Positions 4,711 through 52,697 of a stretch of 64,000 nt of DNA are shown here, in pieces. Numbering within the stretch: position 1 is the first letter of the stretch; every line of letters starts with the position of its first letter. The DNA comes from Parasitella parasitica NRRL 2501 (taxonomy: Eukaryota; Fungi; Mucoromycota): NCBI GenBank assembly GCA_025201805.1, contig MU619261.1, forward strand, positions 80,005 to 144,004, written 5' to 3'. The translations under genes were made by a program, and so were the position numbers. The notes under the pieces are model-generated. The model searched no databases and was not told the origin of the DNA. It worked only from the letters and a program-made list of their open reading frames with translations.

Positions 4711-6446
4711 ATTTATTTTTCCCAAGTAAAAATAAAACAAATGAACGCTATACACTTCAGCAATACTATATATACGTATACACAATCAATCGCTCGGTAT
4801 AAGATTTCGTTTTCAATGGAGTTCGACATTAACTGTAGTAATGTAGTTTAGGATTTATAATTATGTCTTGACATTTCTTAGGGGGGTTGTATTTGAGTTA
4901 CTAGCATAGGTCATGGCAATTGACGGGGTATGCTCGAAATTTCTCGAGTATAATGCAAGCGCAACTTTATTTGTGTCAGATATGTGCATTTTGACATTTG
5001 ATTGCTAGATTATGTTGATTGTAATAATGTCACATTTTTTATTTGGACCCGCTTAAAGTGTCGTGTTGATCAAATAAATGTAATGTACGCACGTATTATC
5101 AGATGGAGCATTATCTTTAGGATGTCATTTATCCAACAAATCACTTTTCTCTTCATTGTGGCTACAATTACCAATTAGGTACTATTTCAAGCCCTTCTGC
5201 TTTCGATCTTGAACATTTACAGTTTATCATGAAAAAAAAAGCTCGAATTCAACGCTTTTTGGGCATCATTTTTTTTCGCTCACTCAGTTTGCTAACATTA
5301 GCATGATAATCCTACGAAAAATGAACACTTTTAACGAAATAAAGAGCATTCAATGTATTACATAATCAAATAGAAATCTGTGTCGATTCAGTCTGTAATT
5401 GACAAAAAAAAAAATATGTCGACTATGGTCCCAAAAACTAGCAATTGTCTTTTCAAGAAAAAAATTGCTTACAATCCTGAAAATCAGACAGTCTAAAGTA
5501 TGCCAAACAAAGAGAAATACTGAGAACAAAGAAGGAGTATGGCATGACAGTAATTTCCAGCTTTTCATATATACCCGATGTCTCCAAGGTCATACATTCA
5601 TTAAATTACTGCCAGTTAATAATATTCATACATCAAAAAAGCAAACTCGCCCCACTGCTTTGTACGACATTCGAATAATCTTTGATAATTTGGTACATTG
5701 TTGAACATTTTACTTGAAATCAGCTGGTGTGTATGCGGAATGGGCACGATTTATTTAATTTTTAAGAACGCAAAAATGAAGATCATGCGATTAAACTGGT
5801 TGATTATTTTCCAGGGGCCGTTAAGCAGGATGATAAGAATTATTTGACATATTGTATATGCCAAAGTAATGGAACATCATCAGACATTTCTTAATATTGA
5901 GAGATGTATCATACTATAAACGCCACTTTGAAGTAAATCGAGGCCCTTCTCCTACTGCGGCTTTCGTAAAACAGTGTGTATGTTGGTCTTTCTACGTACA
6001 AATGAAGTTAATATATTTATATACACATAATTTTTGACTTTGCTATGTGATGATGAAAGGTGGTGGAACATGCATTTATGGAAGCACAATTGATTTATCT
6101 ACATGAGCATATGTATATGGCGGCAGAAATGCATTTAGCTTCCCTTTGGGTTCTGTTCATTTGAAAGCAAGAAACTCTTAATTTAATGGCTCAGTAATGG
6201 CGCTGTTCCGGTACCTTGATTCACAAGGTGAAAACGAAGAAGCTCACCCTTATGATCATGAGCAAAATTTGATGGATCCAGTGTCGCTTTCTGTTTTAAC
6301 CATGTGATGGTATAGTTTCGACATGAAGCTCCTTTTCACTTCCTTTAAAAAGGCAACAAAATACTCTTAACTTCTCAAGTTTTAAGCTTGATATTCAGTT
6401 AACCCTTTCCTTAGAACCACATATACTTTTTTCATTCACAACTCAT

Positions 6447-7076
6447 ATGAATTTCTTTATTTACATCCCTCTTTTTGCACTTGCAGTTGCACATCTTATT
6501 AATGTCACCAATGCATTCGAAATCCGTGGTCGCGGCATTGCCACCATTATGGAATTCAATACTAGTCCTAATATTAGCCCTGCTGGAGTTTTGCAAAGAC
6601 GCGGTCGTGGTACTTGGTAAATTTCTAGTTTACTCAAAGCAGTAGGACTTCACTGACAGTAACATTGGTTATATTAGGTACGACGGCGATGATTTGGGGG
6701 ACGCTGCTTGCTATGGACGTAATGGTCTTCCCTCATTCGATGCCAAAGAATCCCATATGATTGGGGCTATGGTAAGAAGTATACTGTGTTTACAAGCATC
6801 TGTTAACCATATCCATAGGCAATGAACGGGTTTGAAAACTGCTATAAATGTATGAAGATTACGAACAACAAGGACAAAAAAAAGACCGTTGTTGTCAAGA
6901 TTGTTGACAAGTGTGCCGGTTGCCAGGTTGGGAAGGCAATTGACTTGACTCCTGCTGCATTCAAGAAACTTCATAGTGATCTTAACACAGGTGTTCTTGA
7001 CATCTCTTGGAAAATCGTCGATTGTCCTAGTAGTATCAACAACATGATGCCTAAAAAAAAATCCAAGGAAGACTGA
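6447..7076 (+). CDS. Secreted RlpA-like/expansin-like DPBB protein, paralog 1
   Basis: Signal peptide MNFFIYIPLFALAVAHL, dibasic QRR, GRGTWY, AACY, VVVKIVDKCAGC, IDLTPAAF, GVLDISW; 3 exons. Confidence 0.85.
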
Positions 7077-8051
7077 GCTTTTCAGTAAATCAGACTTGAA
7101 ATGTTTTTAGATAACCCAAATAAATAAAATAAAGCATATTTATACTTGCCATGTACTTCTATTGTTGTTTTTTCTCAAACTACGCTTGTTATGATTTTCT
7201 TTGCTAATGATAACACCATAAATATGAATTGACTGTATTTTTGGCTTATATGATATTGTAGGAAGAGTGCAGATATGGAATATTATTAAATAAGCCATTT
7301 ATGCTATTTTATTAATTTTTTCATTGACTTGCTTGGTTTTCAGCAAAACCAGATTCGCAATAATTTCTCAATTGATCCATTTTGAAGGAATGCCCAACTG
7401 CTTACTCTAAATACTATCCGTCTTTTTTATCATCTTACGAGTACTGGCAAATAAGAGACGTATCAAGTCATTTCGAAGCAAAGAAAGAACCGGTAGAATA
7501 AGCACATTACTATCCTTTAATGGTCAAATTCTAGACCTTTACTTTCCTACGGTTATTGGATGTGAAGTAATATTTTAGTACAGTCATGCTGTTTAAGGTT
7601 TCTAGTTCCACAGACTTCCTCACCTTAACATTAATGAAGCATTATGTTATACATTTGCATTTATACGATGGCTAAATTTGTGAAAACCTCAATATATGAG
7701 AGAATACATTACCCATTTCTTAAAGTATTCATTTTCTTGTTGCATTTGTATAGAAAAAAAAATGAGTAACTCATTGTGTTTATTGGTTCACAGTGAACAT
7801 AGTTTCTAGGCCTTCACTTTGCAAGGTAAAAATCAATTTAGTAGTTCTTTATGATCATCAGCAAAGTATGATAGCTTCATTGTCGTTTTTAAACCTTGTG
7901 ATAGTGTAATCTCTGTATGAGGGTCCCATTTTCATCTCTCTTGTTAAAAGGCGAAGATAATCGCCTGTTTTCATGTGTTTTCTTGATTTTACAATCTTGA
8001 TATTTTTCAACCATTTTAAAGCCTTATAAACTTTTCTCATCCACATTTTAA

Positions 8052-8678
8052 ATGAAGTGTTTTGTTTATATGTCTCTCTGTGCATTTTTAATTGCATTGC
8101 TCATTACTAACACCAAAGCGTTCAACATTCGTGGCCATGGTGTTGCCACTGTTATGAAATTCGATAATTCTGCTGTCACTAGCGCTTTAGAAAAACGTGG
8201 CGGCGGCCGTGGTACCTGGTAAAATCAGCTTGTCTCTCAACACATTATATTCCTCCTTAACAGCATTTTTCGATTTTAATGTATTGCTAGGTACACCGGT
8301 GGTGACTTGAAGAACGCGGCTTGTTTTGGCCGTAAAGGTCGCCCTGATTTTACCCCTAAAGCTTCAGATATGATTGGGGCTATGGTAAATGAGATATCTT
8401 GTACCAATAAGCATTGTCTAACATGAGATCTATAGAAAATGCACGGATTCGAAAACTGTGACAAATGTATGAAGGTTACCAACACCGAGAACAAAAACAC
8501 TGTTATTGTCAAGATTGTTGATAAATGTGCTGGCTGCGATAACAATAGCGCAATCGATTTAACTCCTGCTGCATTCAAAAAGCTTGAAAAAGACCTCGGT
8601 GAGGGTGTTCTTAAAATCTCCTGGAAGGTTGTCGATTGTCCTAGTAACATTGAAGATATTGGGCCTAATGATGATTAA
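8052..8678 (+). CDS. Secreted RlpA-like/expansin-like DPBB protein, paralog 2
   Basis: Signal peptide, EKR, GRGTWY, IVDKCAGC, IDLTPAAF; same intron positions as paralog 1. Confidence 0.85.
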
Positions 8679-9606
8679 GCGGATACACACTAAAATATGC
8701 CTAGATGGTACACTTTCTTACCTCACTAATCTAATATAATAGTCTTTTTCTTTCGTATATGCTTGAATAAATGACAATAAAAGCTTTTAGAAACTCATTT
8801 CATAATATCCTGATAGTTCTAGAGGCATTCAACAAAAAAGTAATACATATCAGCAAACGGATGTACCCCTTGTAAAATACAGTTTCATTCAAATTGATCA
8901 AAGTCTTCAATTCATAATGATCCGCTATCTTTTTTAACTGTTTTTAGGCAAATATGCTGTCCTGGCATAAGTATATAAATTTCAATCTGTTGTTTACTTG
9001 CTCTTCGCTATTGGAAATCATTACGCATGATTAATATCTGGATTACATAAATAACTTTAGAGACCTGATGTTATCAAGAATAACAATCTTCATCACCTTG
9101 GCTTGATTGTAGAATTAATAAAGAATAAATTTCCAGAGATCATCCCCAAAATATCTACAATTATTCTATAATTAATCTCTTTTTAGGTATGATTCTATAA
9201 GCTTCTTGATACCAGGACATCTATTAGTGTTACTCTTTACTTCTATCAGTTTATAAGAAGTTAATTCATACATGGGCATATAGTAGCTTAAATACGTCAA
9301 CTAAATTCTTTAGTGTTGTTTGTTTGAGCAACTGTTGCATTTTGCTTTTCTAAATATGGATAAAAAACAAGCTGTTGTTCATTGTGAGTTCAGTGTTTAA
9401 TCAACAGTTCATTGTAATCATCAGCAACAAACTATTCACGGTTTCATTGTGTCCATTGTTTTGGGCATGGTGGTAACACAACAGGAATATCATTTTTGTT
9501 AAAAGGCAAGTACAATTTTTCGTCTTCTTCTTTTCTTGACCTTTAATCTTGTTCTTCAACTAATCTTTTCATCAAAGCCCAATCCATTCCTTAATTCACA
9601 TCTCAA

Positions 9607-10311
9607 ATGAAGTTTGTTACTTGTATCTCTCTTTGTACACTTGTAATTTTATCTCTTGTTAAAGCTTCAAAGGCATTTGATATGCATGACCCTAATGACG
9701 CCACTGCATACTTGAATCTTACTGATATCAATACTGGTATTTTGGAAAAGCGTTATAAAAGACCAGAGTTTCGCGGTACCTGGTAAAATCAAGTTTCATG
9801 AAATCATTGGAACCTTTGCTGACACATTTTTGGTTTTATTAGGTACGACGGCGAGGATTTAAGGAACGCTGCTTGCTATGAACGTAATGGTCTTCCACAA
9901 TTCCATGCTAAAGACTCTTATATGATTGGTGCTATGGTAAGGGAATCTTGTAGGAGCTACATTTATAAAAATTCACTAACCCGATACTCATAGAAAATGC
10001 ACAAGTTTGAAAACTGCTACAAATGCATGAAAATTACTAACAAAAAGAACAAGAAGTCCATTGTTGTCAAGATTGTTGACCATTGCGCTGGCTGTATAGT
10101 CGGTAAAGACATCGATTTGACCAAGACAGCATTCAGAAAGCTTGAAAGCAATTTAGATGTTGGTGAGCTTGACCTCTCCTGGAAGGTTACCGATTGTCCC
10201 AGTGATATCTATCCTCAAATGGGCCCTCATAAAGACTCTGGAAAGTCCAAAAAGCCCAATAAATCTCACAAATCCAAGAAATCGAACAAAGCTCACAAGT
10301 CGAAAAAGTAG
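9607..10311 (+). CDS. Secreted RlpA-like/expansin-like DPBB protein, paralog 3 (Lys-rich tail)
   Basis: Signal peptide, EKR, RGTWY, IVDHCAGC, IDLTKTAF; C-terminal KSKKPNKSHKSKKSNKAHKSKK. Confidence 0.85.
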
Positions 10312-10806
10312 AAGCCAAAAATTCAAAAAAAGGCCCTTAAAAAAAAAGCTCTAGAGAATCCAGAAAGCATCAAGCACTTCATGCTTCCCATGTTCATAAA
10401 CTTATTAATAGCTTTCTTTTCGTAAATACTCTGTATCATTTTTTTTTTCATTTGAATAAATAACATGTAAAAAGTACTTTTTCATTATTAATGATTTACA
10501 CTCGGCCTTGGCAATCCTACTTGTTAATATTTTCATAGGCTTTATAAATCCGTATGGCCTTAACATAAGAAAAGCCTAGTAGTATATGATTCATTGTGCT
10601 ATGTCTGTTATAAATTATGTGACGATAATTTGAGACAATAACAAATTAAATAATTTCATTGTGCAAAAATTCACTTTATGTTTGCGTGTTTTTCTTCGAG
10701 TATCGTTCATGAGTTTTGCTATTTATATCTTTGTACCATTACGCATATTTATTGGTGTATTTATTCATACCCATATTAATAATTTAGCCCTTTTGACACC
10801 ATAATA

Positions 10807-12484
10807 CAGTCGTTACGGAAATCATTGTCGTTCTTTTTTCAGAAAATTGTCGTTCTTTTAAAAATACATTGTCGCTGATTGAATATAAATTGTCGTTTTA
10901 TAATTTTGATTTGTCGTTATGAGTTGGTTAAATTGTCGTTTTAAGAAAGGTTATATTGTCGTTTTTGTTTCTGCCTTTTACTGGATCGTATTTTTCTTTT
11001 ATTCAAATTACAATGTCAAGTGTTTTTTATTATGAAGATGGACAAGATAACCTTTACGATGAGAATGGGATGAAAGTAGATGATCCCATGGAAGATGTCC
11101 TGACTGAAGTCAATGACCCCAACATTGTCTTGGAAACACTAACTAATCAGAATACGTACTTTGATCAAAAGCCTCTCGAGAAGCTAGTTGTAGACAAAGT
11201 AACAAATGGTGTTAAATCAGAAAAACGTACAACTACAGTCTCCGTTTACACGAATTATAGCGATAAAGAAAGAGAACAGTTTATTGATAAAATGATTGAG
11301 TGTGCACAAGAAAAGGGAGTATGGGAATTAATGTTCGAAATGCACAAAGATGGTGGAAACAGTACAGAGAAGACGGCACCATGCCATACAAAAAAAACAG
11401 TGAAATGAAAGGTCGTCCTAGTACTTTTACCGAGGAGCATGATAGTTTCCTCATCAAATTGATAGACAACGATCCCCAAATCATTGTCAGTGATATTATG
11501 GAGATGTTGATTGTAGAATTTGAGGGTTTCAGCATTTCTAACTCTCAACTTAACCATCATTTGAAAAATGATTTATGCCTTACCATGAAGAAAGCTACCC
11601 TCGAAGCAGAAGCAAGAAATTCACCAGAAAACTTGCAGGAAAGATTCGATTGGTTTATGAAATGGAAAGACTCTGATCTCGACTTCACAAGAAATTGTGT
11701 CTTCATAGATGAGGCCGGCTTTCATGTGAATATGCGATTTAATTATGCAAGATCTGCTGCTGGAACTCGTGCCCGTGTTAAAACCGAAAAAACTAGAACA
11801 CCTTCGCATACAATCATTGGTGCCATTCACTCAGGCAGTGTCCTTCTTGTTCAGTTAAGAAAACCTCCTTCTAAGAAGGAACTACTGGGTCAACAAACCC
11901 CTAAAAAGCGGAAAACAACTATTAAAGGGGTAAAGAGAGCTGCCTCACCACCACCAGAGGATAAAGCTAATCCCCCTAAAGGTACTACTACCGCTCACTT
12001 CATTAAGTTTATAAACGAGTTACTTGATGTAATGGACTTGGATGAGAAGTTAAAAGGATGTTATCTGGTACTAGACAACGCATCAACTCATAAATCGCAG
12101 CCGATGAAGCGGAAGATTGAGAAGAGAGGATACAAATTGATGCATTTACCGCCCTATTCACCAGAGCTAAATCCTATAGAGCAATTTTGGGCTTTAGTTA
12201 AGAGAAAACTTAAACGAGATCGTATGATGAGTGAAGAGAACCTATCCAGTAGAATTGCCGATGCATGTAATCAAGTTTTGATTAGTGACCTTTACGGTTT
12301 CGCTAATCACTCTAAACATCAAATTAGAAATTGTTTTAATAAAACCCCTATGTAATCGTTCCATCTGCTGTTTTTTTTAGAGATATACTGTTGTCATCAA
12401 AGTTAAAAATTAAGACGAAAATACAGATAACTAAAAATGACAATATAACCTTTCTTAAAACGACAATGACTTCCGTAACGACTG
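10807..12484 (+). mobile_element. Tc1/IS630-family DNA transposon, copy A (1678 bp)
   Basis: TIRs CAGTCGTTACGGAA(A/G)TCATTGTCGTT; TA on both sides; repeated subterminal TTGTCGTT motifs; transposase ORF. Confidence 0.93.
11013..12355 (+). pseudogene. DD34E Tc1 transposase split by a frameshift near 11310-11320
   Basis: FIDEAGF, LDNASTH and PPYSPELNPIE with 34 aa between the second D and E; N-terminal ORF (MSSVFYYEDGQ) is in a different frame from the HTH/DDE ORF. Confidence 0.8.
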
Positions 12485-12656
12485 TATTCGCACAAAAAAA
12501 AAAAAAATTGGGTCAAAATTTGAGAACCAATTCGCGCACGCCTGGAACAAAAATGAACCATATCGTAAAGTTGGTGAGATTCCAGAGTAACAAATATACA
12601 AACCAAAGATCCGGTGCTGATGTTTATGTGGAGCTTACAGCAATGTTTGTTCTTTA
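12485..12656. repeat. 172-bp non-Tc1 inner part of the left arm; inverted copy at 15762-15933
   Basis: TATTCGCACA14TTGGGTC...GTTCTTTA is mirrored, including the same 14-nt homopolymer. Confidence 0.9.
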
Positions 12657-13156
12657 ACATATTATTAATTAGAACGGAGTGTACAGCTAAAAAATCGCCT
12701 TTTTTGGATTTCGAATCTCCTAATTTGATTGATTCAAGCTATTTCGCCCGACTTTCAACATGATTTATTCTGTTGAAAGAGTTCTTATTTCAAATCAAAA
12801 TACACGACCATTTATTTCACGCTTTGTTGCTTACGCGCATATTTTTTTTATAGTTTTCTAAAACTTCTATATATTTTTAATTAGTTTTTGAAAATGAGAT
12901 ATACTTGATTTAACGCCGACTTCTCAAAAATTCGAAACTTGAATGGGAATTACAAAACCAAACAAAGCATTTATACACTCTATTCCTCGCTGGATTGTGT
13001 TTATTTTGCCGTGTTCTTGTCACCGATATAGATTTTATAAAATCAATATACAACAAAAAAATGTGCTCTTCGATAATAAATCAATAAGGTCTTATTTATT
13101 TTATTATAATGATATTTATATCACCCCAGCGCTAGCATTGATAGTCCTTGTACTAG
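12657..13156. mobile_element. Helitron-related fragment inside the composite element
   Basis: 12657-13019 aligns by eye with about 52272-52608 in the Helitron (for example TTCGCCCGACTTTCAACAT and AACGCCGACTTCTC); imperfect palindrome CAGCGCTAGCATTG followed by CTAG|T at 13153-13157. Confidence 0.55.
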
Positions 13157-13277
13157 TAAGAGTTTAATATCACTAAGCTTTTTCCGCTTGACTTTGATTT
13201 TATAGTAGCCCAAATCTGTCCAATGAAATTGAGTCTGGAGTATTAGGAGAAAGGAGCAATTAATAAAAATTAATAGA

Positions 13278-13513
13278 GAAGGGCCCAGAAACAGACGCTT
13301 ACATGGTACCAACAGAGGAGTTGCACACTGCACACTGCTAGATTCCTTCTGCTCAAATAAAAAAAAAATAGTAATGATGAATAGAAAAAGATGAAGAGAA
13401 GAAGGGCCCAGAAACAGACGCTTACATGGTACCAACAGAGGAGTTGCACACTGCACACTGTTAGATTCCTTCTGCTCAAATAAAAAAAAAATAGTAATGA
13501 TGAATAGAAAAAG
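13278..13513 (+). repeat. Tandem duplication with 123-bp period, followed by (AAT)n at about 13522-13548
   Basis: GAAGGGCCCAGAAACAGACGC...AATAGAAAAAG at 13278-13390 and 13401-13513, near-identical. Confidence 0.9.
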
Positions 13514-13661
13514 GTAATGACAATAATAATAATAATAATAATAATAATAGTGATGACGTTATCTTTTGTGGCTTTTTCTGACTTTAAAAAACGCTGGGTT
13601 AGTTTTAAGTTGGATAAATGTGAAACAATCTCATCCGGCTATTTTGCAGGAAACACTCAAT

Positions 13662-15548
13662 ATGTCTGATGTACTAACTCGTAAGTATATCACCTTTTTT
13701 GTGTCGAGCTTTGCAATAAAAAAATTATGTTTTTAGTTATGGAAGACTTTATTAAGGCTGAAAGATACCCCAGCTTGGTCAAATTTTGTGCTGCTCACGA
13801 GGATCCTATTAAGGCATACATTAGTCATTTCGAAAACGCAGTAGCGGCAAAAAAAAATCTACAAGTTAAAATGAAATTAGCTTTTAATAATGTGCGCGGG
13901 AAAAAGAAAAGAGGCCCAGGAGTTGAGATAAACCTAGAATCATCATATGCTGAAGCAAAAGCTGTGGATGCAATCACTATAGCTGGTTGGGAAAGCTTGG
14001 CTACCTCTGTTCAACAAGCAAAAGAAAAGCTTATTTCAAATCAGGTCAGCTTATAAAATATGCAAAAATACAAAATTGCACCTACTAATAATGTTTAATA
14101 GAGAACTGAGGGTCATGAACATAATAATACTGATGTTGAAAGCGCGAGCAGCACCCAAGAAGAAATTGTTGATACTTCCAGTGAACAGAGTTATGATGAG
14201 CAGGATGATTCTAGTATACTACAGCAATTCTATAAATATAAAAAGGCAACTGAAGTTTCAGCAAAAAAACGAGGTTTTTATGTTGATGGTAACCTCCATG
14301 AAATCCTGTAAGTTTAATACTCCTAGTTGCAAAAAGATCAGCATTAACATTAATTGTATAGTTGCTTATCGGACGTTCTATTTTTGAAAGAAAATGAATA
14401 TAGCGATGAGCAAATCAGTCATTTTGGGGCTACAAATTTGGATAGACTACGAAGTACTTTAATCACAAAATACATGGATTCGAAGGTGAAATTTGATACC
14501 AATTTATATAACCAAGTATCAGAAATATTACGGGTAAGACTTAGTGAAAAGATAGTTTTTATGCATTATTTAAGCGTTGATAATTGTTTTTTGTTTCTCC
14601 ATAGGATTTTCGTTCCCAAGATGGCACACGGAAAACAAAAGAGAAACTCAGCGAGTTGCTAAAAGAAGCTTGCGATGATGACTACAAATTAATCGAAATT
14701 ATAATCAACTGGTGAGTTCTCAAAATAATTCGATAAAAGTAAATGACTCACATTGTACTTTTCATTATGGTAAGAATAGCTTCAATAAGCTCCCTCTTTT
14801 TACCCGGATGAATGAAGAGATTGGTGAAGCAGAGTTGCAAGGAAACTACATTGATCCCATAGTATATCCCATGTTTCACAATCCACAGGAGAACATATAT
14901 TTTCGATGGTATATGAATACGTTGCACTGTTAAAAATTACATTCTTGATTAATAGTTTATTGTATATATTTTCCTATTAAATTAGGTTAAATAGGCAAAC
15001 CCCAGATACGGAAACACGAAGACCGGATGTCACATTTACAAAATGAAGCAAAGAAGAATTGATAGCTCAATAGGTTTCGTTGAAGTTAAACCTGAAAAAA
15101 GTGATTCAGTCAAGAGACATGAAGATATGATTCGGCTGGTCGCCTTTTGTAAAGATGCGTTGGAAAAGCAAAGTAGAAAAACTATGATTGCAGTGCAAGT
15201 TGTTGGTAAGAGTTTACAGGCTGATGAGATGTGTGAAGTGATTTTCAAACTTTCTTACATGCTGTAGGATTTTATATTTCCTTCTATATCTTTGTTTCTG
15301 TAGATGGATTACATTTAATGGTTGAGCTTTATTCCTTCGAAACGGCAAAGTATCTTGATCAACTTTCTCACTTACTCAGCTCGTTCGATAAATTAAAGCA
15401 AGTTATAATTTGCAGCAGGGATAATTGTGTTGAATCTCAAGGTAGTGCCAGGAAAAGAAATTCTAGTCTAGATATATCAGAACTTCATCGGATTATCAAC
15501 ATTAAGAAACCAAAAGGTTTAAGAACATCCCTGTCGTTCAAAAAATAA
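13662..15548 (+). CDS. 8-exon PD-(D/E)xK restriction-endonuclease-fold protein (Crinkler/CR-REase-like), about 480 aa if one -1 frameshift near 15033-15042 is repaired
   Basis: Exons 13662-13680, 13737-14044, 14102-14307, 14362-14533, 14605-14711, 14780-14908, 14986-15205, 15268-15548, all GT-AG; motifs GEAELQGNYIDP, RRPD, GFVEVKP, EDMIRLVAFCKDAL, AVQVVG. Confidence 0.65.
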
Positions 15549-15592
15549 TTTATATTTTCAAGCAGAAAATATTTTACATGTTACTACGCTGT

Positions 15593-15683
15593 ATGCCGTG
15601 TTTTTATATAATTATATGCTAGCTTTTATGCCGAGTTTTTATACAATTACTAATTTGCTTTTATACCAAGTTTTTATATAATT
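15593..15683 (+). repeat. Three degenerate 35-bp tandem repeats downstream of the core gene
   Basis: ATGCCGTGTTTTTATATAATT / ATGCCGAGTTTTTATACAATT / ATACCAAGTTTTTATATAATT at 15593, 15628 and 15663. Confidence 0.65.
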
Positions 15684-15933
15684 CTCTCTCTTTATCATTA
15701 TTTTATCAATATTCATAGTCTTATTTTTATATATTATAGTTACAAAAAAAATTATAAAGAATAAAGAACAAACATTGCTGTAAGCTCCACATAAACATCA
15801 GCACCGGATCTTTGGTTTGTATATTTGTTACTCTGGAATCTCACCAACTTTACGATATGGTTCATTTTTGTTCCAGGCGTGCGCGAATTGGTTCTCAAAT
15901 TTTGACCCAATTTTTTTTTTTTTTGTGCGAATA

Positions 15934-17611
15934 CAGTCGTTACGGAAGTCATTGTCGTTTTAAGAAAGGTTATATTGTCATTTTTAGTTATCTGTATTTT
16001 CGTCTTAATTTTTAACTTTGATGACAACAGTATATCTCTAAAAAAAACAGCAGATGGAACGATTACATAGGGGTTTTATTAAAACAATTTCTAATTTGAT
16101 GTTTAGAGTGATTAGCGAAACCGTAAAGGTCACTAATCAAAACTTGATTACATGCATCGGCAATTCTACTGGATAGGTTCTCTTCACTCATCATACGATC
16201 TCGTTTAAGTTTTCTCTTAACTAAAGCCCAAAATTGCTCTATAGGATTTAGCTCTGGTGAATAGGGCGGTAAATGCATCAATTTGTATCCTCTCTTCTCA
16301 ATCTTCCGCTTCATCGGCTGCGATTTATGAGTTGATGCGTTGTCTAGTACCAGATAACATCCTTTTAACTTCTCATCCAAGTCCATTACATCAAGTAACT
16401 CGTTTATAAACTTAATGAAGTGAGCGGTAGTAGTACCTTTAGGGGGATTAGCTTTATCCTCTGGTGGTGGTGAGGCAGCTCTCTTTACCCCTTTAATAGT
16501 TGTTTTCCGCTTTTTAGGGGTTTGTTGACCCAGTAGTTCCTTCTTAGAAGGAGGTTTTCTTAACTGAACAAGAAGGACACTGCCTGAGTGAATGGCACCA
16601 ATGATTGTATGCGAAGGTGTTCTAGTTTTTTCGGTTTTAACACGGGCACGAGTTCCAGCAGCAGATCTTGCATAATTAAATCGCATATTCACATGAAAGC
16701 CGGCCTCATCTATGAAGACACAATTTCTTGTGAAGTCGAGATCAGAGTCTTTCCATTTCATAAACCAATCGAATCTTTCCTGCAAGTTTTCTGGTGAATT
16801 TCTTGCTTCTGCTTCGAGGGTAGCTTTCTTCATGGTAAGGCATAAATCATTTTTCAAATGATGGTTAAGTTGAGAGTTAGAAATGCTGAAACCCTCAAAT
16901 TCTACAATCAACATCTCCATAATATCACTGACAATGATTTGGGGATCGTTGTCTATCAATTTGATGAGGAAACTATCATGCTCCTCGGTAAAAGTACTAG
17001 GACGACCTTTCATTTCACTGTTTTTTTTGTATGGCATGGTGCCGTCTTCTCTGTACTGTTTCCACCATCTTTGTGCATTTCGAACATTAATTCCCATACT
17101 CCCTTTTCTTGTGCACACTCAATCATTTTATCAATAAACTGTTCTCTTTCTTTATCGCTATAATTCGTGTAAACGGAGACTGTAGTTGTACGTTTTTCTG
17201 ATTTAACACCATTTGTTACTTTGTCTACAACTAGCTTCTCGAGAGGCTTTTGATCAAAGTACGTATTCTGATTAGTTAGTGTTTCCAAGACAATGTTGGG
17301 GTCATTGACTTCAGTCAGGACATCTTCCATGGGATCATCTACTTTCATCCCATTCTCATCGTAAAGGTTATCTTGTCCATCTTCATAATAAAAAACACTT
17401 GACATTGTAATTTGAATAAAAGAAAAATACGATCCAGTAAAAGGCAGAAACAAAAACGACAATATAACCTTTCTTAAAACGACAATTTAACCAACTCATA
17501 ACGACAAATCAAAATTATAAAACGACAATTTATATTCAATCAGCGACAATGTATTTTTAAAAGAACGACAATTTTCTGAAAAAAGAACGACAATGGTTTC
17601 CGTAACGACTA
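15934..17611 (-). mobile_element. Tc1/IS630-family DNA transposon, copy B (inverted, 1678 bp)
   Basis: Reverse complement of copy A; identical ORF translations; two substitutions seen in the outer TIR (positions 1 and 16). Confidence 0.93.
16063..17405 (-). pseudogene. DD34E Tc1 transposase with the same frameshift as copy A
   Basis: ORFs 16063-17118 and 17010-17462 translate identically to those of copy A. Confidence 0.8.
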
Positions 17612-18272
17612 TATAGCACGTCTACCAATCTACATTTTTTCGCGAAGAAGTTTGTCTTGTTGAAATTATCGTGCATTCAACACATACGTATCCTTTTATT
17701 AAACTACATTTTGTTACAGACAAGTCTCCAATTCATCGAAATTTTGGGAACAGATTTGTCTTATAATCATGAATTATAAGAATTTTAATTGCTATAAGAA
17801 TATTACTTGAGAGCAGATCGTTAGATCAAAACCTCAGGTAATTCAAATTGCTATTTTAGGCAATTTTGTCTCGGTTAAAGCCAGAACTAAAATTGGATAG
17901 ATAATGAATATTTCGCACACCTTTCCCATTTAACCGTGTAAAATGCAGATAATATTTAGCTTGTAGTTTTGATTCAAAGTGTATAATTTAATAAATATCT
18001 AACATGCACCAAAATAAATCACTGTGACAAATAAATCTTTAAAATATTATCATCTATGATTTTACCATCAACATAGAATTACAAAAAAAAACTAGGTATG
18101 AATGATTAAATATGTCAGGGAGAGGAAGAGGCTCGCTTGTGTGTGGAAAACACTGCGCTTTTTTCTAATTACTTGTAGTTTTACCAGGAAAAAAAGAAAG
18201 ATGTATAAGGTAATAAAGAGGAGAAGGGATTTATAGAAGCATGTAATATTAGTACAGAAAGAGAGAAAAACA

Positions 18273-18900
18273 CTACTTTTTCTTGGGACCATATTTGGGC
18301 GAAATGCTCTTTGGGCAAGAGACAGTCTTCCAAGAGATGTCAAGAACACCAGTATCAAGGTTACCAAGTTTTTGGAATGCGGCAGGGGTCAAATCAATAG
18401 CTTTACCAACCTTACAGCCAGCACACTTGTCAACAATCTTGACAACAACTGTCTTTTTCTTGTTCTTGTTGTTGGTAATCTTCATGCACTTGTAGCAATT
18501 TTCAAATTTCTTCATAGCCTGTGAGTATTACATTAGCGAGAGATGTTAAGAAAAAAATGCGTCCTTTTTTATTTTTACCATTGCGCCAATCATGCTATGG
18601 ATTGTGGCAGAGTAAGCAGGAAGACCATTACGATCATAACAGGCAGCGTTCTTCAAATCATTACCACTGTACCTAGATAAGCCGAGAAATGGTGTCAGTG
18701 AGAATTTAACATGTTGAGATAAAAAGCTGATTTTACCAGGTACCACGGCCGCCACGCTTTTCTAAGGCGTCATTGATGGTAGAATTATGAAACCTCATAA
18801 CGGTGGCAATACCACGACCATGAAGTTCCACCGCCTTGGCAACATTGATGAGCGTTGCAATTACAAGTGCACACAGAGAGACACAAACAATAAGCTTCAT
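18273..18900 (-). CDS. Secreted RlpA-like/expansin-like DPBB protein, paralog 4 (opposite orientation)
   Basis: MKLIVCVSLCALVIA, EKR, GRGTWY, IVDKCAGC, IDLTPAAF, GVLDISW. Confidence 0.85.
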
Positions 18901-20149
18901 GTGAGATGTGAGTAAGGAAAGGTTAGTATTAAGGAAAGGGTTGATTGAATATCAGGCTGAAAATTGGAAGAAGAAGGAGAAAAGATAGTTTTATATTGTT
19001 CAAACCTTTAAACGAAGACAAAAAGCGGACCCGCCATCATGTTGAAATTGAGTTATATGATCCATATGAAAGGTGATGCTTATGCTACACAAAAATAAAT
19101 TGAAAATGTTCGGTAGGAGTTTTTTACGCCTGGTTTAGCAAAAGATCTGCTTTGGCCTTTTTTGACTTTACAAAAGGCATTTATTCAAAAGGCTTTGGTC
19201 TAGATTTCAACATGATTAAGATAAAAACAACAGTAAAATGTTAGCGTTGGAAATTAAACACTTTGAAGTGAAATGTATTCAATAGAAAAGCTATTCCTGT
19301 GAGGTTCACTGTGTGTCTCTTGAAGTGCGCTTTCGGTTGCTGTTCCACTTCAAATGTCCACACATGAGAGAGAAAGGAGGTGAAGATTTGGGTGACTTAA
19401 ACTACCGAGCAAAGTTGACAGTTGTACAAAACTGCTTTAAAAGAAGCCAACATGCGCACCATTTCTAATTTCAATTGAATAATAAACACAACAGATATTG
19501 CTTGGTCCAATGACAGCTTTCAAGTTGAGAGTTCTTGTTTACTTTGAACACAAAAATTGCCTTGAAACAGATTTATTACGCTTTTTTAGTCCTTTTACTT
19601 GTGAACATTAAAAGTATCTATTTCCATCGCAATTATTGATCAATGCTAAAAATACACCAATGTATATCAAAGGGCGTCACTGTTGTTGTTTTTAATTAAA
19701 GCAACAACTAATATGCACTTCTTCTCGCCATGATGATTATCTTTCAATATAGCATACAGCGTGTGTCGGCTTTTTTGAGTGTAAGGCGCTTCGCCGTCTG
19801 TTAAATGTGTATCACTTTGTGTCCACTTTGCTGGTGCAACTGTAGACAAAGGGATCATAATATATTGCTCGTTTCTCCCAAAAAAAGAAAAAAAAAAAAA
19901 AAATCAGGATAGCCCATCAGTATAGGACGTTCTTAAAGCCAAGGACACTTTATAGGCAATATACTGTAAACTGTCTTTTTGATTGTTAATTATGTGTACA
20001 CATAGAAACAATACCGCCATATTTACTTTCTTTTTTATTGATGAAAATGATTCAGTTCTAATCTCAAGACATGCTGCTTGATAAACTGATTGCGACAGTT
20101 TAAATGCTTATGATTATTATATATTTGTGTAAGATCACAGCTGTACAAT

Positions 20150-31530: not shown

Positions 31531-34470
<2,940 letters not shown>

Positions 34471-45400: not shown

Positions 45401-46555
45401 TAGTCATTTCGCAGTTTCTGAAAGAAAGAAAAAAAAAGCTCAAGTAAATGATAAAGGTTATGGTGATTGCGATAATATATAAAAGCGTTTCTGGTTACAA
45501 ACCTTTTATTTCTGATAAAAGCTAACAAGCTCCTGAGAGAAGAGAAATATCTCCCTAAATAGACCTCTTACCATCATTCATAGTGAAAATACAAAAAGAA
45601 TGAGTTGTGAAATAAGCTATATAGATCACATCTATAAGCTCCAGGTAGTCTTTGAAAAAGGCCACAGTTGTCTATTGACAAACATCTGTGATTCTGGGTG
45701 TAAGTGTGTCTGTTGGCTTTGGATCAAAAACCTTTAATTGGATTCAGGAACGAAGAGCAAGGTTAAAGATAAACACATTTATGTCCTTGACATTTCATAA
45801 ACTTCTATATAGATAATCTTTTATGAAAGGGTGTATTATCCTGGTGGTAAATTGTTTCCTTTTCTTTGGCATTTTCTTATTCCTTCAGTTGATCTGGTGT
45901 CTTCTAGTGTAGAGGGTCTTGTCAGACAAATACCAAGCTGGATTATGTATACCCAGTTGCACAGTAGAACAGCTAGTCAAACCTGTTCCATCTTTATGGT
46001 ATTAAGATGGCTCAAAAGTGTGTGTCTTTGCAAAGTCAGGTATGTAGATTTCAGGTGCCTGATTTTTTTTTTTGGGTCTACGCGAACTTTAGTGTGTTAA
46101 TGTCTGTTTTGTCAGAAGAAAGACAAAAACTACGAGAAAACAATGTTTAACGATCTCTAACATAAAAATAATTAATGCAAAGTAATGCATCAGACTAGAA
46201 GACATCTTTTAATAAAATACTTGCATAGTTTAGAGCAAGTTTTTGTACTTTTCAAGTTGACATCAGATGACGGTGGCGACTTTTCTGAAAAAATATTTTT
46301 CAAGATCGGAGCGTGAGATCGTCAGGCCAGGTACAGACATGCAAGTGCTATCATTAGAAAGTTAAGAAGCACACAATTTAAATGAAATAAATTTTGATTG
46401 TTTTTCTCTTGAATTGAGTAAGCTATGGCTTCTCAAAGCTAATGCTTTCTTCAAAAAAGCACCATTTTTCTTTGATAGCGGAGATTAAACGCTTCCAAAA
46501 TCAGGAAGTAAAAAATCTTTCAAAAACTCCATTTGGACAATTAGAAAACAAAATT

Positions 46556-48945
46556 CCTTAAGGATCTTGCCAATTGGAGGCCCATCTCCCTGATAAATAC
46601 TGATTGCAAGGTATTCACTAGAATTTTGAATTCTCGGGTGATTGATGCTGCTAATCAGGTGATTACGCAACAACAAGCGGGTTTTATGCCTAACCGTTTT
46701 ATTGGCGATCACGGCCTCGCTCTGCGAATTCTGATGGAAGACGCTCAACTATATTCCAACCGAGCTCTTGGGGTGGCCATCGATAGCGCTAAAGCATATG
46801 ATTATGTCAACGAGAACTACATTTGCAAAGTATTGCAAAAGTTTGGTTTTCCCTCCACATTCATCACAAGCATTCGCAATTTGTTCTTTAAGAACCAAAT
46901 AGTGATTAACGTTAACGGGTTTTTGACAGATTCTGTACAGCAGAAACGGGGACTACGCCAGGGGGATTCCATTTCTCCAGTGCTCTTTAACTTTGCCTTG
47001 GAACCTCTACTGCTAGCCATCTTAAATGATCCCAATATCAAAGGATACTCCTTGAACACCAAAGCCGTCAAATCATCGAACCTTCAAGTGCCATCTCCTG
47101 CTCCCATTAAACTGTTAGCTTATGCTGATGATTTATTAGTCATTGTCAACAGTAGTGCCGAGATGCAGGCCATTCAGGATCATATATCATGCTATGGCCG
47201 TGCATCCAATGCTAGGGTTAATTATCATAAGTCGGTCGCTTTCCCCCTCTCTGGGGACAGGTCCGTCGTACGTCCAGATTTGTTCCGCCTCTCACGGCGC
47301 CTTCAATTCCAATGGCACGATTCAAATAGTGCGTCCTATATGAAATACCTTGGGTACCCCATCTGGTTTGGTGTCCACCAAAGGACGAAGTTTTGTGAAG
47401 AAAGTATCCTCAAGTTACAGGCGTCCCTCGACCGCCACTTAACGCGTAATATCTCTGTGTACGGCCGGGCAAAAATGGCCAATACTTTGTTCCTGGCTAG
47501 ATTCTGGCACGTATTGAGGATTACTACGTTCCCTTTGGCCTTTATCAGGAAGATATCCTCTATGATTTACCAATTTATATGCTACAGGATCTTTCCGCCT
47601 ATGAGGAAATCTGTCATTTACTTACCCAAAGAAGATGGTGGTCTGGCAGTTTTCGACATAACTGTGCAACAACATATACTACAGCAGCGTTATGTCAGGG
47701 CTCTCCTGATAGACGCCCCAGGTGAGCAGCAGCTGCCTAGTTTCCTCCTGCAGCTCCTCTCAACGTTCATACAAGTAACGTATGGGGCTCCCTACGTGCA
47801 GTTACCATTGTTGTTTAAGAACTTTCGCTGGGGCTCGCCTTTGACTGGCCTACATTGCCTCCTCCCAATTTTGCGCTCTGTCGATGCCTTTTATATTGAT
47901 GATTCCTGGGATCAAAGCCAACTGTCTTTTGACACGCTGCTGAACTTTCCTCTCGTTGCCCTATGTCAACAGGATGACGCTGCCCATAGCATTGTTCAAC
48001 ACAGACAGATACGACAAAAACCGGCCAGCACTTTCTTAGAACCAAGTCGCTTATCCGAGGCTCTAGTCTTTAAAGCTCGAAGCAGCTGTCCCAACCCTGG
48101 CCTGTTGACAAAGATTCTTCGAGCGGTAAATTCGGGTGCTCTGTCCTTCATCTCGTCCATCAACGTATACTTGTCTTCTCCCTCTGGCCCTTCTCTGAGT
48201 GCCGCGGGCAGTGGTGTTGACTTCTCGCCGTATTTTCGTTCTAAGTTCATCTACCAAGGAATATTGGTCTTGTCCATGACTAATTCTCAGCTGCGAACGA
48301 TGTATATGCGAGATCACCCACCAATCAACCGCCCAGCGCTGGATGTTCATCGCTTTACTGCTATATCCTCCTTCCTCCATACGCGGATGCCCAGCTCAGC
48401 GCGTAATCTTTGGTTTCGTTTGCTACATAACAAAGTCTCATCTAAGGTGAATTTGCGGCCTATCCTCAAGCTGCCGGATGAAATGTGTGTTTTCTGTGGC
48501 GGTCGTGAGACTACTGCCCACATGTTGTTCACTTGCCCATCTCATGCTGATGCTTGGCAAAACTACTTTGCCTTGGTCTTTGTGCCTTCTGGTCCACTGA
48601 ATATGGATCAGGTATCTCAAGATGTAATGTCGTTAAACCTACAGGGATACCGTCTTCTGGACTCCGAATTGAAAGTTTCTGTTTTCGAAGCGGTTACATG
48701 TCTACTGACTTCTGTCTGGCGTGCCAAATGGCAACACTATTTTGATGCAGTTGCCCCTGACAACCAATCCATCGTGGATCGTGCCATGGTCAATTTGCGA
48801 CACTTATCGGCTCTTAACATTTTGTAATATAGTNNNNNNNNNNNNNNNNNNNNNNNNNNNNNNNNNNNNNNNNNNNNNNNNNNNNNNNNNNNNNNNNNNN
48901 NNNNNNNNNNNNNNNNNNNNNNNAAAAAAAAAAAAAAAAAAAAAA
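46556..48945 (+). mobile_element. 5'-truncated L1/Tx1-like non-LTR retrotransposon
   Basis: Open RT ORF (NWRPISLINTD, GLRQGDSISP, LAYADD) plus C-terminal CVFC...H...C finger, stop at 48827, poly(A) tail, 13-bp TSD AGAAAACAAAATT at 46543-46555 and 48946-48958. Confidence 0.93.
48834..48923. other. Assembly gap (N run) in the LINE 3' end
   Basis: Run of N. Confidence 1.
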
Positions 48946-51290: not shown

Positions 51291-52697
51291 CTAGACTAGC
51301 TGACCTACTCGCTTCGCTCACGACGGCCATCGTCGCCCTACCGGGAGCTCAATCTTTTGATAAGTGCTAATCAGATATTCAATGCTCTTTTATTGTTGTT
51401 TATCTATAACTTAAAATATATTGTTAGACAGAAATAAAAATATAGATGTAGTAACGCACAATAGGAAAAAAAAACGTAAAAATCAGTAGAGTTATTTAAA
51501 TACTTCATGGAATACAATATTATCGGTGTATGATCCAGTATAGTTTTTGGTAGTTGAGGTATTTCTATGCAGAAGAATTTTGATTGAAGATAGCTGCTTA
51601 ATGCGCGAGAAAGCAACATATAACTGGCCATGTGAGAAAAAGACCAAGAAAGTCGAGTGTTGAGCCATGATGGTCATGGTGAATACCGGTCTAACAGAAA
51701 ATTAGCAATCAACTCAGGACAGTACAAAGAGAAATCGGGGTTTGCACTGGTGTCTCCATTTTTCTCTATGCCCACATGCTTGACAATGGCGACAGATGCT
51801 GTTCCTTCTACCAAGATCATGGCGTTTGGTGAAAGAGGATGTACTTCTTCTAGCCATGTTATGAGTATTGTTGTGTATTAATTTGGCACCCAATCTACTA
51901 GTAGATCGCAAATGACCTTCTTGTCCACAGCTTGAACAAATACGTCTGCTGGTTGTTGCGTCATTAACGCTGATTGTTTCTCTTTGCTGATCTACTTTCA
52001 TAGTTTCAGATTGAGATCCCACTTTATACAAAGATTTTGATTATGATTGTAAAGTGAAAACAAATTTGAGTCATACGATTAGCAATGTTGTTTGCGCAAT
52101 GACGATAAGAAGATCGAGATGGCCTATGTCACCACAGCTTCCGCGAGTGTTAGTATTAGCACGGGTGTTATTGAGGCAAAGCCTGCTTGCAGAACGCGAA
52201 TGGCCTTCTTGACCACAGCTTGAGCAGATTCTAATAGCTGGCAATCTGTGTTTGTAGTAATAAAAAGTGTCAACATAATTGTATTAAATAAAACAGAGTG
52301 TGCAGCTTAAAAAGTCGCTTTTGCTGGTTAGACCATGTCCAATTTCGAAAGATTCAAGCTTTTTCGCCCGACTTTCAACATTATTCACTCTGTTTAGAGA
52401 GTTTTAATTTTAAATTAATGTGCACGTATTTTACTTATAATTTTCTGACGTGTTAAAGTATTTTTAATTAGTTTCTGAAATTGAGGATGTGCTTGGCTCA
52501 ACGCCGACTTCTCGAAATTTAACAAACTGGAATGGAACTGAAAAAACCAACTAAAGCATTTGTTAACTCCATTTCTTCTTGGTTTAGGTTTGTTTTGCTT
52601 TATTCTTGAGCTTCAAGCGACTTTAATGCGGCTGTTTTTTTTTTTTTACAAAGCTTGTAAAAAAAGTTAGCAGACTCCATTTTTTTAATTATATAGA
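51291..52697 (-). mobile_element. Non-autonomous, internally deleted Helitron (1407 bp)
   Basis: 5' TCTATATAAT at 52697, 3' CTAG at 51291, inserted between A and T, GC-rich hairpin near the 3' end; remnants CSSCGQEGH, HDLGR..ICRHCQA and PIF1 helicase end FSHGQLYVAFSR...TDNIVFHEV. Confidence 0.85.

Follow-up and report, generated by a model that had tools for sequence, protein, structure and literature searches.

Composite transposons, in which two copies of one element enclose other DNA, are common in bacteria, and in eukaryotes they are known mainly as engineered vectors and rare alleles. The Paris composite of Drosophila virilis reportedly consists of two Tc1-like copies that flank unique DNA and moved together with it, but it is a single event and lacks recurrent cargo. 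A unit of this kind is described here from a stretch of 64,000 nucleotides of the fungus Parasitella parasitica NRRL 2501 (GenBank assembly GCA_025201805.1, contig MU619261.1, positions 80,005 to 144,004; hereafter the window), in which two inverted arms, at window positions 10807-12656 and 15762-17611, each hold a complete Tc1 element and enclose a core with a spliced nuclease-fold gene. The unit, now dead, is one instance of a natural Tc1 "sandwich" that recurs in this genome and is enriched for one nuclease-fold family. We estimate at roughly 55% the probability that Tc1 transposase, working from two 5' ends, made and moved it as a composite that has since died.

The closest described systems resemble this unit in part. 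In the Sleeping Beauty sandwich (Zayed 2004, as related in PMC4229213), two complete Tc1-family elements of opposite orientation surround cargo with like ends outermost, but the construct is engineered and its inner ends were deliberately inactivated; in contrast, the window unit is natural, its inner ends are intact, its arms reach into the flank of the cargo gene, and the layout recurs in one genome. The composite insertions of maize Ac (10.1101/2020.01.07.897926) are bounded by 5' ends, have arms that are born identical and inverted, capture donor flank and are a possible source of hairpin RNA. These are one-off laboratory alleles of a hAT element, whereas the window unit is built of Tc1, with whole elements in both arms and a repeated association with one gene family. 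Bacterial Tn5/Tn10 and Tn630-NC1 (PMC11544213) carry cargo between two insertion sequence (IS) copies, Tn630 belonging to the same superfamily and Tn5 transposases being read inward, but these composites are prokaryotic and their arms stop at the IS end, whereas the window cargo is spliced. An earlier reading of this DNA from its letters alone (the sequence-only reading) knew of no such architecture for Tc1 elements of Mucorales; a literature search likewise turned up no account of this layout from that order, outside which the Sleeping Beauty sandwich, the maize composites and Tn630 stand as precedents. The recurrence suggests a natural, little-described eukaryotic route for moving genes.

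The order of the whole unit is TA-[Tc1 5'>3']-f-core-f-[3'<5' Tc1]-TA, with two copies of one element around other DNA. Its features are as follows, a second locus of the core, C55, being treated below.

10805-10806, no strand: TA at the left outer end, putative target duplication (from the arm comparison)
10807-12484, plus strand: left Tc1, 1678 bp, with 5' terminal inverted repeat (TIR) outermost; transposase ATG 11013, stop 12355, DD34E
12485-12656, no strand: left segment f, 172 bp, TA plus the inverted 3' flank of the nuclease gene, shortened on its inner side
12654-13020, no strand: 367-bp interspersed repeat, standing in place of about 90 bp of the C55 paralog
13272-13475, plus strand: non-coding motif of about 80 nt, two tandem copies with a 123-bp period
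13662-15548, plus strand: eight-exon gene of a Mucorales family with PD...ExK motif, GT-AG introns and a frameshift near 15028
15684-15933, no strand: 3' flank of this gene, its outer 172 bp (15762-15933) being right f
15934-17611, minus strand: right Tc1 with the same deletion as the left; both differences between the arms lie in its outer TIR
17612-17613, no strand: TA at the right outer end (from the arm comparison)

The left arm and the reverse complement of the right arm are identical at 1848 of 1850 positions, with two mismatches. Each arm comprises the complete 1678-bp Tc1, whose 26-bp TIRs are accompanied by other short repeats in subterminal position, and the 172 bp of f beyond its inner end. 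The transposases carry Pfam DDE_3 and helix-turn-helix (HTH) domains with a D to E spacing of 34; all four Tc1 ends adjoin TA, both 5' ends are outermost, and both transposase open reading frames (ORFs) point inward. Domain searches, D34E spacing and arm comparison therefore agree with the sequence-only reading as to the reverse-complement 1850-bp arms, the whole DD34E element in each with its TIRs, TA flanks and inward ORFs, and the 172 bp common to both arms. That reading also took both outer ends for TA-flanked Tc1 5' TIRs, as indeed they are, but one of them is not canonical: the TIRs begin with CAG at three ends, and the right outer end has a terminal T in place of C. TA is found on both sides of the whole unit but also at all four Tc1 ends, so that the outer TA pair cannot discriminate a single target duplication.

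This copy is dead, a fossil. An identical deletion of 22 bp, at 11317/11318 (mirrored at 17100/17101), affects the two transposase ORFs; compared with an 83%-identical copy of Rhizopus microsporus, the HTH is partly lost and what follows is out of frame, so that neither Tc1 is autonomous. Compared with a 99%-identical allele of another isolate, the cargo gene has a one-base frameshift near 15028, a site that falls between its PD and ExK motifs. A search of the whole genome gave no third copy of this Tc1 or its TIR and no TIR-bearing helper. Since both transposases are broken, one outer end is mutated and no other family copy was found, the unit cannot now move by itself, contrary to the suggestion that it can. 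Two independent Tc1 insertions as the origin of the arms are ruled out by the shared 22-bp lesion and the shared inner flank, from which one arm appears to have been copied from the other. The shared 172 bp had been cited as something that two independent insertions would not produce, and they do speak against these; but f is the 3' flank of the nuclease gene and flanks the Tc1-free core at C55 as well. All that it argues for is that one arm was copied from the other, and composite cut-and-paste is not proved by it.

Both arm mismatches fall in the right outer TIR, no further than 16 bp from its tip, and one of them changes the terminal base (C to T). The chance probability of such clustering is near 1e-4, indicating that the interior was either homogenised or collapsed in assembly. 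The latter leads to the artefact explanation, a collapsed repeat set on both sides of a unique core. The window lies in a 32.8-Mb genome of 450 contigs (positions 80005-144004 of the contig here called C25), and N gaps at window 33373-34282 and 48834-48923 mark this assembly as scaffolded; these gaps, together with perfect interior identity and differences at one tip only, are what an artefact would lead one to expect. Collapse could mask differences inside the arms, but the layout itself would hardly arise from it: the four junctions are distinct and unique, the core and 160 bp of f are contiguous in an independent assembly (L085), and other Tc1 pairs of this genome have non-identical arms with different stops (C30, C66, C45). 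An artefact is accordingly judged highly improbable.

Two transposase searches of the genome identified about 10 inward-facing Tc1 pairs within 11 kb (C25, C46 twice, C128, C29, C30, C66, C45, C87, and C68) and one outward-facing pair (C38). Under random placement, about 1 inward neighbour pair is expected, and the maximum in 5000 trials was 6. With two queries, C25, both C46 pairs, C128, and C29 gave identical scores for their two arms; the arms were similar at C30, C66, and C45 and unequal at C87 and C68. The paired transposases are 33-64% identical to the window transposase, indicating that the pairs belong to several Tc1 clades. Five cargo-family searches located homologous nuclease-fold genes inside four pairs (C25, C46a, C87, and C128), where 0.04 would be expected under a uniform null, all pair interiors together making up about 0.13% of the genome. 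In each of these four, the nuclease gene and a transposase gene stand tail-to-tail, their stops separated by about 0.4-0.8 kb. The two arms at C128 give equal scores for the last nuclease exon, and arm length thus varies between pairs. The composite architecture proposed from the letters alone is therefore real, and it recurs in the genome with other Tc1 subfamilies and homologous cargo.

Long stop-free frames of 440-490 codons are present in both arms at C46:166955-177087, C46:211056-216978, C128:46678-52275, and C29:16443-24899, and these pairs are the best candidates for live composites. With about 10 pairs, several of them with intact frames in both arms, both the carriage of a spliced gene between two 5' ends and the rebuilding of arms become testable. 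A separate family of five near-identical solo Tc1 elements (C16, C10, C34, C65, and C35), with 476-codon frames and 60% identity to the window transposase, is recently active and unpaired.

The orientation of the pairs bears on hybrid-element insertion in place, by which a Tc1 beside a resident f-core-f would produce a local inversion between two identical copies with no relocation. This mechanism is documented to yield inversions between two identical opposite copies (PMC2775673), and every pair is found at a single locus. It predicts, however, about equal numbers of inward and outward pairs, as against the observed ratio of about 10 to 1; the new target TA would have to mirror the old one exactly; and the inner flank is not copied, yet the C128 exon is present in both arms. 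We consider it improbable.

Movement of the window unit as a single composite by Tc1 transposase is likely. This reading is supported by the exact coincidence of the outer limits with Tc1 5' ends, all four ends being TA-flanked; by the recurrence of inward pairs far above chance, four of them with homologous nuclease genes in tail-to-tail arrangement; and by two further observations, the match at C55, which ends a few bases from the Tc1 junction, and an inward Tc1 piece at L094 (see below). As the limits are TA-flanked Tc1 5' termini, a transposase should have made them. In the Sleeping Beauty sandwich, transposition can proceed from two ends of the same side (PMC4229213), and in maize Ac, re-replication after alternative transposition gives inverted composites (10.1101/2020.01.07.897926). 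By analogy with the maize insertions, re-replication probably took place during formation, and this route is the simplest. As donor, an f-core-f unit with a single Tc1 next to it would suffice, and so would an older composite. Alternative transposition would insert the 5' ends of two sister copies at a new TA, and replication from both forks would proceed inward, first through Tc1 and then into the sequence adjoining its 3' end. One fork would halt in f; the other would traverse the nuclease gene, reach the far end with its inverted f, and there be joined to the first. Tc1 transposase would in this way join two 5' ends into one TA, placing the whole unit among expansin-like genes. The unit in fact sits in a cluster of four expansin-like DPBB/Barwin paralogs (6250-10311 and 18273-18973), between two converging members. 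Re-replication would leave identical arms with shared lesions, an inward bias, and a variable extension of the arms past the inner Tc1 end.

The nearest rival differs only in how the arms are copied. It supposes a stable Tn10-like composite family moving by cut-and-paste through the outer ends, with inter-arm repair keeping the arms identical and extending them inward; C55 and the solo homologs would then be cores stranded after excision of both Tc1 copies. The constant tail-to-tail spacing, interiors of 3.2-3.7 kb in 6 of the 10 pairs, the restriction of mismatches to the outer tip, and a TA-CA-TG-TA word near one C55 end agree with this scheme. Such a word has the shape of a Tc1 excision footprint, although the literature search gave no support for this form, and it occurs about once per 20-30 kb anyway. 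Furthermore, the pairs spread over several Tc1 clades that also hold solo elements, and no multi-copy composite is seen. We hold this scheme to be rather unlikely.

Several observations weigh against the sandwich composite. The pairs other than that of the window are known by match coordinates alone, so that exact outer ends and TA flanks are documented for the window pair only, and the uniform null models take no account of transposon clustering. Six of the 10 inward pairs gave no nuclease match inside in the cargo-family searches, and most homologs in other genera (L086, L088-L093) are without a Tc1 pair. The sequence-only reading had looked for support to the same arm-core-arm unit at other loci or to an orthologous empty site: the genome search detected no second copy of the window unit or of any other pair, only the Tc1-free paralogous core at C55; no empty site or strain with the window flanks was found, and the flank pattern was unmatched in JGI metagenome contigs. 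Synapsis between like ends of sister copies is an assumption in the case of this Tc1 family, and the confinement of both mismatches to the outer tip has to be put down either to the assembly or to an interior that was homogenised afterwards.

The core has a history apart from its arms. At C55:66.66-70.70 kb, between neighbours read from their ORFs as PEX16 and thiolase, lies a decayed core paralog, about 80-85% identical, which has f on either side; no Tc1 lies closer to it than about 12 kb. This locus is not syntenic with that of the window, so that the core with its end segments must have moved or been copied at least once, and the f-core-f unit, found at two unrelated loci, is older than the identical arms. 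In the Mycotypha homolog, f-like sequence occurs downstream only, with 72% identity, the same as for the gene, indicating that f is the 3' flank of the nuclease gene and left f its duplicate. At one end of the C55 paralog, similarity to the window breaks off close to the Tc1 junction, a few bases from it. Considered as a foldback or long-TIR element of its own, the C55 unit has one end decayed and no readable target site duplication (TSD). Its inverted ends extend about 70-100 bp further inward, a stretch replaced on the left side of the window by the 367-bp repeat; since this repeat sets the left junction, the arm/core junction of the window is secondary. The repeat has at least 40 genome copies, 92-98% identical. 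Its ends are fixed and asymmetric, neither a TIR nor a TSD is seen, and a diverged copy is at window 52282-52608.

The f arms of C55 belong with two other large inverted duplications that lack a Tc1 pair as arms, from which it might be supposed that the nuclease unit, or break repair near it, makes fold-back duplications of adjoining DNA with Tc1 as a bystander. In Zychaea mexicana (L088/L089), an inverted duplication with arms of more than 6 kb (roughly 9 kb) and a 780-bp centre holds outward-facing nuclease homologs, 2.3 kb of the arm being 100% identical. In R. microsporus (L087:7890-12134), a 4.2-kb near-perfect palindrome is centred in a nuclease homolog and flanked by Tc1 fragments and a short-period tandem array. 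Both are built differently from the window unit, whose arms end exactly at TA-flanked Tc1 termini, as would be unexpected without a transposase. The fold-back explanation is thus very improbable and, like hybrid-element inversion and misassembly, fits less well than the composite readings.

The cargo gene was followed exon by exon (13662-13680, 13737-14044, 14102-14307, 14362-14533, 14605-14711, 14780-14908, 14986-15205, and 15304-15548; plus strand, GT-AG introns) and with the full-length homologs P0126, P0150, and P0151. Its homologs, of about 465 amino acids, keep helix-E, RPDG, and FVEVK motifs in alignment, i.e. the conserved helix-E, PD, and ExK motifs of PD-(D/E)xK nucleases. The Atlas model of a homolog matches the PDDEXK_12 cluster (TM 0.43/0.45) and the HsdR_N cluster (0.69 by target), and together with the motifs points to a nuclease fold. 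Two AlphaFold models, poor over the motif region, gave no clear PDB match, and a Pfam scan of full-length homologs gave no domain; a Crinkler N-terminal header was also lacking. The spliced PD-(D/E)xK cargo of the sequence-only reading is hence retained as to its eight exons and the motifs conserved in homologs, with the correction that its frame is broken. Crinkler-type restriction endonucleases and fungal PD-(D/E)xK families (review PMC5289972; Pfam PDDEXK_12) share the PD...ExK motif and transposon-rich surroundings, but no Pfam match, header, kinase or nucleoside triphosphatase domain was seen in the cargo family, and its clusters are restricted to Mucoromycota. Judged from its sequence, this passenger gene is probably a selfish one that cuts DNA.

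Upstream of the cargo gene, and on the same strand, the motif of about 80 nt occurs at 13272-13352 and 13395-13475. It is also found upstream of homologous genes in four genera and at C55, at 0.2-5.2 kb from the start codon, with one copy in R. delemar, three in Helicostylum, seven in Phascolomyces (with AAT linkers), and about 20 in Dichotomocladium. The motif loci are as follows.

L086:2516-4665: motif
L091:2470-3579: motif
L093:7241-7461: motif
L094:8882-8958: motif
C143:74683-74837: motif, two copies, no nuclease match nearby

The motif, which often forms tandem arrays, goes with a single subfamily of the nuclease genes. Near four other homologs it is absent, and its pattern had no match in JGI metagenome contigs. 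Its conservation is at least that of coding DNA (82% versus 75%, window to Phascolomyces). A peptide repeat is ruled out by non-triplet indels; RNA folding is weak, 12400-16000 gave no Rfam match, and no tRNA was found. A recognition site or an RNA can be guessed. It is tempting, though doubtful, to imagine that Mucorales hold a long-lived, self-propagating Tc1 sandwich family, regenerated from one arm at each move, with a selfish nuclease cargo working with the upstream motif array as recognition sites or small RNAs. Carriage of a spliced gene between two 5' ends would in itself be a route for the spread, possibly the transfer, of an unannotated nuclease family among Mucorales.

The nearest relatives of the window transposase are in Rhizopus, Phycomyces, and Mucor. 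Transposases 87-97% identical to it (clusters P0002/P0003/P0041) occur in metagenomes and in records under the names Rhizopus and Phycomyces, and a Mucor protein co-clusters; this similarity suggests that transfer between genera may have occurred. Outside this genome, Tc1 and the nuclease family are loosely associated. No Tc1 was found near the homologs in Mycotypha, Phascolomyces, Helicostylum, and Absidia. The Dichotomocladium homolog has one convergent decayed Tc1. In another Rhizopus assembly (L094), the homologous unit is immediately preceded by the 5' part of a Tc1-like transposase, which points inward and is similar in its N-terminus. In the window itself, a weak Tc1-like blastx match is present at about 45500-46000.

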